Below, piece after piece: positions 13,611 through 21,900 of a stretch of DNA of 64,000 nt; the first letter of the stretch is position 1; each line of letters starts with the position of its first letter. The notes under the pieces are model-generated. The model was given only the letters and a program-made list of their open reading frames with translations, searched no databases and had not been told where the DNA came from. Origin of the DNA: Pavona decussata. Its lineage: Eukaryota. The stretch is from contig CDRNST010000070.1 of assembly GCA_977016875.1 (NCBI GenBank), forward strand, positions 992,001 to 1,056,000. The letters are read 5' to 3'. The position numbers were made by a program, and so were the translations under genes.

Positions 13611-16600
13611 ATTGATTGACTGATTCGAGTTTAATTACTAACCAATAAGCAATTTTCCAAAAGATTTTCGCCCTTCAGTTTTGTTTTAGACTTTTCTTTA
13701 CCCTGAGCTTTTAAAAACATTTTTAACGAGCGAGATGAAAACCCCGGTTAACTTGTAAACGGGGATTAGCGTTAATCGGCTTTCGAAGAACTGGGCTCTA
13801 GCTTGTAGGAACAGCCTATGGACTGTACATCAGCGACATGTACCACTCCACAAATCCACATATCGTAATACCCAAAACCACGTTGCTTTTGAATTATGAC
13901 TTAATTTTTGCAATAAAGACGTTTGCTAATAAAAAAACCTGTTAAGCAGGGTGTTAGAGGTTAAAAATTGTTTGAATGAAGATATTAAATACTGCTTTAA
14001 ATGACTTCAAATGCGAAGAGGCCGAACGCTGAGAAAATAAAATGGCGGACAATCTTCAGCGCGACCTTACGCATTGAAAATCCAGGCGCCAGTTATTCAA
14101 AGAGCGGATAATTTTTATCCAGCGGATAAGTTGCTATCCAGCAGATAATAAAATATCATCCTGCGAAATCGCCCGATTCAACGGCCGAGTTGGCTAAAAT
14201 CTGGGGATATTCCGCAAGATTGAGCAGAATAATTGTTTTTTTTTTTTATTCAACACATTGATAACAAAGCACAGTTCTATTTGCAGTAAAGCTGGAGACG
14301 ATCTTTATTTTGCCATTTTTCTCCCTGACACACGAAATTACGTACATCGCAGGATATCTGTTGTGTACGGGCGACGAATATTGAGTACACCATGACCATA
14401 TTTGGGCAGTGTTAACAAAATGTATTAATTGAAGCACATTTTATCCGCTGGAAAGTGATTTTTCTGCTGATCAGGTGTTTTGCCGAGAAAGATTTTTTTG
14501 TGTCGATCCTCGTTATTTTATACCCAGTTGACTTTTCATATCTCAGTGCGCGTTTTATGCCCGGTCCGTGTTTTACACTTACCGCATTAGCAACATCGCT
14601 TAACCCACCCCCGCTCCCCCGAAAAAGTCTGTACCTTCATCAGCGTTTTCTGCGCAAATTTTTTTTTGCCACAGGAGTTAGCGCAAAACATGTTTAACCG
14701 AAAATGTTTCGGGAGTTTAATGATGCCATGCAATAAAAATTTGGCAGCTTATAGTAAAACTAAAGGGAACACTCACAGCAAGTTTCCATTCTGAATTAGG
14801 GATTTACGGTATGATCGAGTTTACAACACAATGCGAACAAATTATCATACAAAATCATATAGAATATTGGCTATTCATGTAAGTCAATGATTTTAGCGGT
14901 CATTATACTGCATCTGTTCGGAACAAATGAAATCTCATTTTTTTTCGCGTTAATTGCCAAACGCCAGCGGCAAGAATCGTTGTTGCTCCGAACTAGTTAG
15001 TTAATGGATTTATATAACGTGGTATTTTGCTTGCGATTCACCGCGAGTGCACTAAAACTTCACAAGTGCCGTTATGCCACGAACAGGTGCAAACATCTTG
15101 GAGCTGGAGGAGGACCTACGTCATAACTGTTAAAAAGCAATTTGGGGGCAAAGATCTGTCAAATAGAACATATTACGTTTGATTGTGCGCAATAACAAAT
15201 CAACAGATAAGGCGCCAACCAATCTGACATAATTCAACGCAATGACGCACAGACTCCTTAAAAGGTAAAATGACAGAGTGACAGCTGTTTATGCGAGAAG
15301 GCTGCTAACAGGTGATAAGTAAAGAATAGCAACGAAGCTCGTATGTAGCAGATGTTTTATGTTGGAAAATATCAAATTAAGGCCTTTATATTATAAAGGA
15401 AACGAGAAAACTAGCAACTTTAACGCTTTAAGAACAGATCCTCGTTATTCTTGTCGTTTGTTATTTTCACAATTAACGCTTAGTGTTTTCCCCCAGCCCT
15501 AAATTTCCAAAGTTAACGAGATAAGCAGTTTTCAAATTGCCGACGCTATTTCTATCGATTGTCCTCAAACAAATTGTCGTTTCATTGAAGGGGAAAACCG
15601 TTCAGCACAAAATAGACAATAGTCTTACCTTTATTACAAAGACTTCAATTAATGCGGCTTTTCATAATGTCCGTAATTAAAATGCGATCATAAACTTTCA
15701 AATTGCGAAACCGCAAGGCTGTAGTTAACAACTTTTAGCATGTTTTGAAAAAAAAACAAAGCAGAAGTGAACATTAAGTTTTCTCGATCCCAACTCACGT
15801 TTGAGAAGATTATCCATTAATATTAATAACAGAGACAAAAGAAAAACAAGAGAAGATACAACCGCCAGCGTAAGTATACAAGAAATCGAACAGAAACTCA
15901 CGAAAACACTGGTCGCACAGTAAAGATGTGTTTCAGATAGATACAGGACCATCAGACATAACAAGTAGCAAAAAAATATGATAGATATAAGCGCCTTATT
16001 TTATTCACGGCGCACATAACATTTTAAGCAATACAAAGACGTCACTTGCACCAAAAGCTTTGGACGTCAACGATAACACTTAACGACCCATTATTTATCT
16101 TCACAACAGGCGGCCATCTTACCGGGGTATATGTTTTCTCTTTTTTCTTAATTTAGACGCAAAACCTTAAAAAATGGAAAGTAATAAAATTTCACCTCAT
16201 TTATCGTACATGAAGTGGCATGAAAACCTCGATACAACTGACTTTTCTGCCAGCGATTCCGAACAGGAATCTTCAGTCAGCTCGACTGATAGCTAACAAC
16301 ACAGGTAATCATCCCACGGAGACAATACGCTATCCGCATTAAGGGGCATAGCGAAGCTTTATTAAGATGATTGACGTCTCTAAGAAGCAGGCAGGACGTT
16401 GACAGAGTGTAGAGGAGATCCACCTTTATCTGCCGCAAGTTGCCGTTTGGGGCTTGTCTTCCATAGTGCGACTCAGCTCTTGAAACTGTTGGTATTTTGT
16501 TCGCAAGAACTGGAAGGAAGAAAATGTAAGTCAGTCTTTTATTATTTTAACTCTCACTGCTTGGGATATACAGGTAATGTGGTAACAACTTGGCGTCTTG

Positions 16601-18500
16601 GTGAAATGCTTAGGTCTGGCAGTTTTAACTGTGAGAGACTATCGCCATACTTATCATTCGAAGCGTCAAAAAAGGAGACGAATTGGTCAGTGCGTAATAT
16701 AGATCCTTGGGATGGTGGCTCTAAGCGAGTATAACACGCTACTTGTTGCGGCTTCCCTACTCAGGCAAACTACAATAACAAAATTTGTGACCAAACAACA
16801 TGTGGCCGAGTTTGAAACTCGAAAGATTGTCAACTAACTCGTAAGTTGATTTATTATTTTAAATTTAAATTTCCTTTAACTAACACTGTTACCTTTGATA
16901 ACTACAACTGAAAATTGAAAACAGGACGTGCTTAGTTAATTTTAAATCAGGTAGTTCTGGAAAAGTCAATTCTGTTTTAATCAACAATGAGGAGAAACGC
17001 TTGGAACGAGATAAGGTTATGGTAAAAGCTACTGGCAAAAGTCATACACTGATGAACTTACAGGTCACACCCTCTTCAACTAGCAGAAATGTGAAAGTGC
17101 TCGATTCGAGTGAGCACAAGAAACGTGGTGAACTGAATCCCGCGGAAAATCCCTATACAGTAGAAACAAACTATTTGACGATATAATGCCGTGCGGATGG
17201 ATAAATCTATCCGCCGAGACATGATTTATTCACAGCATCGAGTAAATATTTTTCAAGGAAGACCAGAAACAGATCTAAGAATACCGAGTCACATCGAAGG
17301 TAATCGCTAATCTCATTTAATTTTCCGTGTTAACTGGGACCAGAAATCGAAACAAGAAACTATTTTGAAGACATTACAAACAAAGGTCGTGGTACTCCAA
17401 CGCAGACGAGTTTATCCTTCTTACCATCTATGCCCTAGATTCTAAAACTTAACCGTTAATCTCGGATGATCCGTACAAAAGATAAAAGATAATAGACCGA
17501 CTATGACAATCGACTGGTTCCCGTGCTTTGTCTTCCTTGGAGTATTCAAGTTTTCGCCATTTCCTGAACGTACTGCTTTTCCCACCATCGTCTCATTTGT
17601 TCGTTTGTCAGATGACGTTCGGCGCATTTATTCGTAAATGCGTCTCGGAAGCGTAATTGTTCAGGAAAACGTTTGTATGTTGCCCACATAATAAAGCAAT
17701 TCATCTCCAAATATTTCAGAAAAATAAATTGAAATTTTAACTGCAAGGGGAAGAACTGAAAAACCAACAGTATGAAAATGAAACTACCAAGTGTTTTTAG
17801 TGGTCACACAGGCTCCAAAGTTGTGAGCTCCCTAATTGACACTAGGTTTGACTCCATAGGGGAAAGAGGTAGCAAAATGTACATTCTTCGAGTTTGGTAA
17901 GGCGGTGAAACTGATCTCAAACTAACCAAGACAAACGTAGAAACAAACAAAAAATACAATAAATATATAAACAAAAAAGTAAAATTTTCATATTACAGAC
18001 CCTCATCTTTTGTGGGATGCAAGCAAGCAAATTAAATATGTAACTGGGAAACCAAAGATTCACTTTGTAAAACATTTGCTGTACATCGTCGGAATAACAA
18101 TCGACGACAAGCTGCCCACTAATCTAGTGCCTAGCAAGTAATACGGACTTTTTTCAAACTGTTGTCACGGTTGGGCCGACATATTAAATTTTCTTTTGCA
18201 TAAAAAGGCATGCAAACGAGGCGAAAAGGTCAATAGCATACACGGAGCCTCGTTTGCATGTCAAACCGCTGATGTACAACTTTTCGTCAGTCGTTCGGAA
18301 AAAGTGGCCATTCTGAACAAAGTTACAAAACCTACAACGCATAAACAGCTGACAAATGACATGGTTCCTTTTTGAGACCAGTATTAAATGAGAAAATCGT
18401 TCATTTTTTTATAAAACAGTTCGCTGAAACATTGAAAGGCTTAAATTTGGTTTGTAGCAAGGCATGGTTAGAAATCGAAATGTTGACATTGGCTTTAAAA

Positions 18501-18553
18501 ACTATAACAGGACGTTTCGGTCGCAGCTGCAACCTTCTTCAGGCGTCCCTAGT
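18501..18553 (-). ncRNA. Minimal type-I hammerhead ribozyme motif (Penelope-like element type), stem I partly degenerate
   Basis: Minus strand CUGAAGA-A-GGUUGC(AGCU)GCGACC-GAAAC-GUC. Confidence 0.6.
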
Positions 18554-20716: not shown

Positions 20717-21789
20717 GACTCAGCTGTCAGACATGTGATTACCACGCACTGTGTAAGTGACCAACTCAAGGAGCTTTGGGATGACTCGGCAACAAATATC
20801 CAGACAAAACGAAAACGAAACCAACCATGGGGGATAGTGTTTTAACGATATTTTAATTACAGACATCTAGTCTCGAACATGAAAGGAACGATGACTTTAT
20901 TTCAGTGAAAGAAAAATTGAGCCACTGTAAATCAATAAAAGCAAAGCTATATATATATTAAAGGCAATGTCAAAATTAATAACTTGCTTTGCAACAGACA
21001 ATACCAATACCGTCAATTTAAGCAGGGGCTCGCTTTGTGTTGAAGGTTTATAAAGCTTAAAGTTTTTGTAGTTGAGGACTTTTGAATGGTGGCCCATAAA
21101 CTAAGACAACAAACATCGTGCGACGAAAGTGAAAGCAATCGTATTAATATAAAGATGTCACAAAGTACGAAGTGAAAGGAAACAGATCGACACCAAGCAA
21201 AAACATGGCCGGAAAGAGGCGCTGCAAACTCGTAAACAAACAAGTTGGGAGCTATGCGCATTCGCTTTTGAAGGCCGCAATAAAAGGTTCCCTCGTTAAG
21301 CCAACAGCAGCTCATTAATATGCTAAACTAGACATGCATGTTTTGAACAATCAAGAAGGAATCCTTCGCTTTCGTCGTGGTCGCTTTCCACCGAGTTCAG
21401 CAGTTGATTTTCACCACAAAACCAATAACAAATTCTGTCCTGACATTTTCAATATAGTGTCATGACAAACATCGACACAAGAAACTGAAAATCTGTTCAC
21501 AAAAGATATGACAACCAAACAAGAAGTGACGAACAATACAACCTTACCGTTTCATCTCGGATTTCAATCCGAGCGAATTCAAACGTTTATCCCGGCATAG
21601 CAAGCTCAAATTTTGGCTCCAACCGGTTCACCTCCTCGAGGATTATTATCTCGATGCTTTTTGTGGCTGGTGGGAGAAAAGAAATCGGGTTAAAAGCGAC
21701 AATTTCTCACAACAATTCAATCTTTGTCCACCTAAGAACTGCCAACCGAGCGAAATATTTCCACAATAGAGGGTGCGGCAGGAAAACGC

Positions 21790-21900
21790 AATTGCGTCAG
21801 CCCCCTAAAAAGCCAATGAGAGCTCGAAAAAGACAATAGAGCTGTCAATTCTGGGTGTATTAGCCAATTAAATGGCGACAACTCTCTGCTTTCGCGCGCA
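21790..21900. promoter_or_regulatory. CpG-rich, probably bidirectional promoter of MORC2-like gene
   Basis: Two CCAAT boxes (agccaat at 21811 and 21862), TGCGTCA, YY1-like AAATGGCG (21870), E2F-like TTTCGCGC (21890). Splice donors point away on both sides (+21930, -21547). Confidence 0.55.

Follow-up and report, generated by a model that had tools for sequence, protein, structure and literature searches.

A conserved splice-donor block beside the MORC2 gene of stony corals and a candidate exon of a divergent non-coding RNA

The DNA analysed here is a stretch of 64,000 nucleotides from the coral Pavona decussata (contig CDRNST010000070.1), referred to below as the window. Its plus strand carries a MORC2 gene of about 25 exons (22171–47947, with the ATG at 22171). 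On the minus strand, a few hundred bases from the 5' end of this gene, lies a deeply conserved block that contains a predicted 5' splice site (donor); this block beside coral MORC2 is new, and its conservation is solid at the level of the DNA. An initial annotation had placed a spliced transcript with three exons between 16340 and 21900, running head-to-head with MORC2 and occupying the position of mammalian TUG1. Its first donor, with the last exon base at 21548, is the one contained in the block. The transcript and its exons, and their conservation, were assessed by comparison with other corals.

The plus-strand neighbour is the orthologue of MORC2, as the initial annotation had named it. 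A MORC2A-like protein of Oculina patagonica (P0008) covers it exon by exon in tblastn, with residues 22–1024 distributed over about 24 exon-sized pieces. The best match of its CW exon among solved structures is human MORC2 (41.6 bits, versus 28 for MORC3), and its relatives carry the HATPase_c_3, Morc6_S5 and zf-CW domains together with Chromo_MORC2, the MORC2-specific chromo-like domain. The window protein is about 57–66% identical to every stony-coral MORC2 found, and both splice sites of its start-codon exon are kept in six of the seven coral taxa compared below. A Logan contig of a MORC2 transcript from a different coral (L027) can be aligned collinearly to the window between about 22012 and the ATG. 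Because the score of this alignment is low, the 5' end of MORC2 is given as a range, 21885–22012. Donor 21548 is thus 340–460 nt from the MORC2 5' end, a range that follows the placement of that end, and 623 nt from the ATG. A start at the TTTCGCGC motif, which came from a by-eye match of the 5' end of L027, was dropped, as local alignment puts it near 22012. Positions 1–22 of L027 are an Illumina adapter remnant, and its first bases are non-biological.

For comparison, the MORC2 locus and 10 kb of the DNA upstream of it were retrieved from Orbicella faveolata (L009), Desmophyllum pertusum (L010) and the sea anemone Actinia tenebrosa (L011). In Desmophyllum the 5' end is missing from the annotated MORC2, and the retrieved DNA does not include the promoter. 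The Orbicella locus contains about 2 kb of N, and its MORC2 promoter and first exons are present twice (L009:3535–4838 and 9300–10603, 5765 nt apart); the doubling is probably an assembly duplication, which leaves just about 3.5 kb of genuine upstream sequence. Public metagenome contigs were also scanned with a 27-mer from the donor block, and an exact match was found in 14 coral-holobiont contigs, representing at least five taxa beyond the window and Orbicella. Species A (L015, L019 and L020) is the nearest relative of the window, with 83% identity around the donor block. The others are species B (L013, L016, L017, L021 and L022), species C (L018, L024 and L025, with L014 close to these), species D (L023) and species E (L012). 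The contigs were treated as DNA because they contain introns of MORC2 and align collinearly with genomic DNA. Neither the window nor Orbicella was chosen by means of the 27-mer. Within the Orbicella-like group alone, whose members are 85–95% alike, the conservation profile does not separate exons from introns.

The window aligns to the DNA upstream of Orbicella MORC2 over 21467–22258, with 67% identity and an E value of about 1e-92. The invariant block, an exact run of 29 nt, is the longest in the 900-nt window/Orbicella alignment of the MORC2 5' region, and a 28-nt run in the promoter (21885–21858) is the second longest. When identity is counted in 30-column windows, the pair shows two peaks of 29/30, one in the promoter (21889–21860) and the other over the donor block (21577–21533). 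The best such window in MORC2 coding exon 1 reaches 26/30, and parts of the MORC2 5' leader fall to the random level of 7–9/30; neutral sites in the leader are therefore saturated. Since the donor block outscores coding exon 1 and the leader stands at the random level, the block is taken to be under selection. The donor is kept in all seven coral taxa and ranks as the most conserved segment upstream of MORC2 among stony corals, and in the seven-taxon alignment the conservation extends into the flanks of the searched 27-mer, including about 60 nt of the putative intron. The letters directly before the donor are GAGATGAAACG, and the last eight of them, ATG AAA CG, are identical in the seven taxa. 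Alignments of the window/species A pair with the other corals stop at the same position, 21467, in every comparison. In its own genome the donor block is single copy at up to 3 mismatches, which led us to reject a spliced-leader or multi-copy small RNA gene. The sequence comparison supports the view that this donor, opposite in strand to MORC2 and within a few hundred bases of the gene's 5' end, marks something functional. To this extent the first exon end of the initial annotation is borne out; its count of two donors is at chance level, as described below.

Splice signals were scanned on the minus strand, and three were found in all seven taxa: donor 21548, an acceptor giving an exon start at 21666, and GTGACT at 21911, a weaker donor-like signal within an apparent promoter motif. 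The plus strand served as a control, with cut-offs of five of the seven taxa for donors and four of the seven for acceptors. It recovered the MORC2 acceptor 22063 and donor 22241 as well as a candidate donor of the 5' untranslated region at 21929; donor 22241, where the exon with the MORC2 start codon ends, and donor 21929, the end of a candidate 5' untranslated exon, were the only ones on that strand kept at equal strength under the five-of-seven cut-off. On the minus strand, donor 21548 and the acceptor enclose an exon-like unit of 119 nt. All seven taxa keep the two boundaries of this unit, an acceptor-like AG preceding 21666 and the donor following 21548, and a TTTTAAC motif stands about 25 nt upstream of the exon start. 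The interior of the unit is less conserved than either end in the window/Orbicella pair. None of the three frames stays open along the unit, and two coral groups are set apart within it by an indel of 13 nt, which is not a multiple of three. The position, strand and conservation of the unit and its lack of a reading frame are thus direct observations on the DNA, and the unit appears as a non-coding element on the opposite strand within about 1 kb of the start of a coding gene. The pyrimidine tract that precedes it could be a pyrimidine-rich initiator instead of part of an acceptor. The first AATAAA or ATTAAA on the minus strand is about 650 nt past the donor.

Two further observations concern this part of the alignments. 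In species B to E and in Orbicella, a second copy of the donor motif precedes the main donor by about 80 nt (alignment A2, columns 415–450); it reads ATGAAACG followed by six more bases and a strong donor, TTTG/GTAAGT (a slash marks the splice junction), and it carries an ATG that shares the reading frame of the conserved one. This second copy is absent from the window and species A. Separately, all four contigs of the Ga00998xx series (L014, L015, L020 and L025) end exactly 100 nt upstream of the 27-mer. They belong to two coral species whose sequences differ by the 13-nt indel within that stretch, and in species A this end is 3 nt upstream of the candidate start of the exon. The shared end point may be technical, or may hint at an RNA origin of these contigs.

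Between the exon-like unit and MORC2 lies a conserved promoter block (Table 1), in which 30-column windows of the window/Orbicella pair score 23–29 identities. CCAAT-box promoters of the NF-Y type that work in both directions exist in animals. The coral block resembles them in its two conserved CCAAT boxes between the two units, accompanied by GCCAT and TTTCGCGC; in contrast to those promoters, the coral motifs are putative, their names having been assigned by eye from the sequence.

Table 1. Features of the MORC2 5' region and of the adjoining minus-strand region (window coordinates).
Feature	Coordinates	Strand	Description
MORC2 start-codon exon	22063..22241	+	Encoded peptide close to coral MORC2 N-termini; acceptor 22063, donor 22241
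Conserved promoter block	21750..21920	.	Two CCAAT boxes, GCCAT beside one, TTTCGCGC, TGACGCAAT, AAATATTT
3' splice-site-like signal	21667..21695	-	TTTTAAC, pyrimidine tract, AG; kept in 7/7 taxa
Exon-like, putatively non-coding unit	21548..21666	-	119 nt; exon 1 of the initial annotation plus candidate 5' boundary
Invariant block	21543..21571	-	29 nt; includes ATG AAA CG/GTAAG, the predicted 5' splice site
Conserved start of putative intron	21467..21547	-	First ~80 nt; inter-group alignment stops at 21467
Dispersed repeat	20176..20622	.	In putative intron; internal direct repeats, units ~105 nt
Proposed exon 2	17425..17740	-	Alignable to species A only; boundaries not conserved
52-aa open reading frame in proposed exon 2	17549..17704	-	Not conserved
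Proposed exon 3	16358..16509	-	Acceptor common with species A; poly(A) hexamer not

The donors, acceptors, branch site, pyrimidine tract and AATAAA listed by the initial annotation are all present on the minus strand. They comprise the donors ACG/GTAAGG (last exon base 21548) and ATG/GTAAGA (last exon base 17425), the acceptors TTGCAG (last intron base 17741) and TTCCAG (last intron base 16510, downstream of CTGAC and a pyrimidine tract), and AATAAA at 16363–16358. By themselves these splice and poly(A) motifs do not exceed chance. GGTAAG occurs at 0.27 per kb per strand in the window, from which 1.5 copies are expected in 5.56 kb against the 2 seen, and AATAAA occurs at about 1.1 per kb per strand. 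The region had also been described as mostly unique, CpG-rich and without a long open reading frame (ORF). Most of it is indeed single copy, with the exception of the dispersed repeat, for which at least about 98 further matches were found elsewhere in the same genome, on many contigs and often in short tandem runs, and of 18445–18696, which has one other match. The same repeat is also present in the MORC2 introns of Desmophyllum. The CpG observed/expected ratio is about 0.9–1.1; as the body of the MORC2 gene gives an equal value, it does not distinguish the region. The statement on ORFs holds. Neither the 52-aa ORF in proposed exon 2 nor a 73-aa ORF of the same exon gave a Pfam match, a homologue in word searches or an encoding contig in public assemblies, and no record was found for the 85-aa ORF that is the counterpart in species A. 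A search of 14500–22400 against Rfam families, with E values up to 1, yielded no match.

Downstream of the donor the window aligns to species A alone, with 60–66% identity over much of the region. MORC2 introns reach about the same identity, so this similarity is weak evidence. The core of proposed exon 2 is 72–79% identical between the two, against 60–66% around it. Its limits are lost in this nearest relative: species A has no AG at acceptor 17741 and lacks donor 17425 as well, and the 52-aa ORF is disrupted there by replacement of its ATG, by an indel and by stop codons. An AG located 15 nt upstream, which would give an exon start at 17755, is common to the window and species A. Proposed exon 2 is, on this comparison, probably not an exon as drawn. 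Proposed exon 3 presents a mixed picture. The branch-like motif (ACTGAC/ACTAAC in the two sequences), the pyrimidine tract and the CAG of acceptor 16510 are all kept in species A; on the other side, AATAAA is replaced by GATAAA, and the similarity runs past the proposed end to about 16040. Within the minus-strand block shared with species A at 16040–16460, two ACGTCA-type motifs, GAGACGTCAATCATC and GTTGACGTCCAAA, are kept, and the block could be a distal regulatory element. Profiles of four blocks common to the window and species A, searched with nhmmer against the 2–4 kb available from more distant corals, found nothing.

On the reading that we favour, and which we hold to be about evenly poised between true and false, the 119-nt unit would belong, as its first exon, to a spliced non-coding RNA that diverges from MORC2 and is specific to stony corals. 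The arrangement would start with the conserved promoter block next to MORC2, followed on the opposite strand by the unit, read from 21666 to 21548. The RNA would be transcribed away from MORC2, and use of the upstream AG would make the unit its second exon instead of its first. As at mammalian promoters, on which this proposal is modelled, the U1 small nuclear ribonucleoprotein (snRNP) would bind the promoter-proximal 5' splice site ACG/GTAAG, and its binding would allow the antisense transcript to elongate and be spliced rather than be cut short. Acceptor 16510 would be one candidate partner for donor 21548. Transcription and splicing of the unit, and any function that it may have, are predictions from these signals; the conservation of the donor suggests that a divergent RNA is really made. 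The U1/poly(A)-signal model of promoter direction was reportedly set out by Almada et al. in 2013. The coral locus resembles that model in that a predicted 5' splice site precedes any poly(A) hexamer and that the promoter and first donor are conserved above the rest. The role of U1 and poly(A) signals in setting promoter direction is, however, documented in mammals (PMC11230626). The unit is also comparable to long non-coding RNAs (lncRNAs) that diverge from bidirectional promoters (PMC11230626), as it lies antisense within 1 kb of the start of a coding gene and has no coding frame.

Several observations weigh against such an RNA. The identity inside the 27-mer among the metagenome contigs is built in by the design of the search. 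The plus-strand control of the splice-signal scan also returned weak matches, including at least one false acceptor inside a MORC2 coding exon, and for this reason we regard the donor as solid and the acceptor as suggestive. RNAalifold predicts two hairpins in the unit, with no covariation. The stretch after the donor that is free of poly(A) hexamers is matched by 29% of random positions and is thus not significant, and past the nearest relative none of the downstream exons is conserved. The block might instead be a regulatory element at the DNA level, made up of transcription-factor sites of the MORC2 promoter, in which case the likeness to a donor would be coincidental and no stable antisense RNA would be produced. 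We consider this explanation unlikely, although it is in keeping with the situation of the block amid conserved promoter motifs 340–460 nt upstream of the MORC2 5' end, with the end of conservation about 80 nt past the donor, as expected of a promoter-proximal block, and with the lack of conserved downstream exons in distant corals. For a binding site, an exact run of 29 nt with more conserved sequence after it is long. This run holds a full G/GTAAG, placed 119 nt after a kept pyrimidine tract and AG, and the lower conservation of the unit's interior relative to its ends is the pattern of an exon whose splice sites are constrained.

A 5' exon of a protein-coding gene would account differently for the same donor: translation would start at the conserved ATG located 8 nt before it (ATG AAA CG/, phase 2), and the coding exons would lie far downstream. 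The identity of these eight letters in all seven taxa would fit such a gene, and in many animal genes a 5' exon bears the start codon at its end. The ATG is kept, but no conserved frame follows it: within 6.5 kb downstream in the window and 7.2 kb in species A, tblastx gives no stop-free match, and the matches between the two contain stops, on both strands and in several frames. Neither did tblastx against Orbicella, Actinia and Desmophyllum detect a conserved coding exon downstream. Junction phases were read by eye, exon by exon, with no joined sequence searched. When the conserved ATG is joined in this way to exon 2 as drawn, to 17755 or to 16509, a stop is met within 3–14 codons in the window, and the same joins in species A give unrelated short peptides. 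In Orbicella no called protein gene overlaps the 10 kb upstream of MORC2, and the gene that comes next in the window is encoded on the opposite strand. We consequently regard a protein-coding exon as decidedly improbable. The full model of the initial annotation, a polyadenylated lncRNA with exon 1 ending at 21548, exon 2 at 17740–17425 and exon 3 from 16509 to about 16340 as an ancient positional counterpart of TUG1, appears very improbable. All of its motifs are present, its first donor is conserved, acceptor 16510 is common with species A, and mouse offers the precedent of Tug1 and Morc2a sharing a promoter (PMC7487648). Against these points stand the motif counts at chance level, the loss of acceptor 17741, donor 17425, the 52-aa ORF and AATAAA in the closest relative, and the lack of any trace upstream of Actinia MORC2. 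The three-exon chain and the link to TUG1 are, on present sequence evidence, unproven.

The mammalian background had been quoted correctly in the initial annotation, namely that MORC2 and TUG1 share a bidirectional promoter and that TUG1 has a CUG-initiated ORF. In mouse, Tug1 and Morc2a share a promoter, with start sites about 680 bp apart (PMC7487648). The coral unit likewise lies opposite to MORC2, with its donor within 340–460 nt of the MORC2 5' end, as TUG1 starts within a few hundred bases. In contrast to TUG1, with its conserved CUG-initiated ORF1, the coral unit is known from sequence alone and has no conserved ORF. The parallel with TUG1-BOAT that the CUG ORF had invited therefore fails: the frames of the unit are closed, the tblastx matches are ridden with stops and the 52-aa ORF is not kept. 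The likeness between the coral element and TUG1 is positional only, and the initial annotation had noted no similarity of sequence between them. The conservation of the coral element is seen among stony corals and, unlike a shared arrangement of greater age, not in the sea anemone. In 7 kb upstream of Actinia tenebrosa MORC2 no match to the donor block or to the promoter was found and only the MORC2 coding exon aligns, a comparison at the level of sequence that a diverged transcript would escape. The gene upstream of MORC2 in Actinia encodes a helix-loop-helix (HLH) protein on the same strand. Nothing older than the stony corals is thus indicated for the very old MORC2-divergent arrangement that had been proposed. 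We judge it extremely improbable that MORC2 has kept a spliced non-coding head-to-head RNA since before the cnidarian–bilaterian split; the unit would then be the 5' exon of a positional equivalent of TUG1 whose sequence had fully turned over, with only the promoter-proximal donor under lasting constraint in each lineage.

Some other features of the window were noted. In the large MORC2 intron the CpG observed/expected ratio dips sharply to 0.08–0.19 between 24000 and 26000, compared with about 0.9 in the rest of the gene; the dip could correspond to a methylated insert. A MORC2 intron contains, at 37550–37994, three overlapping open frames of 90–112 codons, rich in PTYL, that arise from a simple tandem repeat, and the GC skew of this segment is strongly negative (-0.25). 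At 631–1260 on the plus strand lies the last exon of an upstream plus-strand gene, encoding a coiled coil and an acidic tail with a weak match to NUDE_C. The minus strand at 9877–10146 carries an endonuclease fragment of the long interspersed nuclear element (LINE) type, with a weak match to Exo_endo_phos_2.

If an RNA is made from the unit, stony-coral lineages would share a non-coding exon with a letter-perfect donor, in contrast to MORC2 proteins that are just about 60% identical in the same lineages and introns that can no longer be aligned. To our knowledge, few cnidarian lncRNAs have any evidence of conservation, and for that reason the unit would offer a concrete locus for a conserved cnidarian lncRNA. 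An ancient MORC2/lncRNA pair, for which there is no support here beyond corals, would if true bear on the question of lncRNA loci that persist by position. A conserved divergent partner could also be relevant to the regulation of MORC2, which acts as a chromatin silencer.

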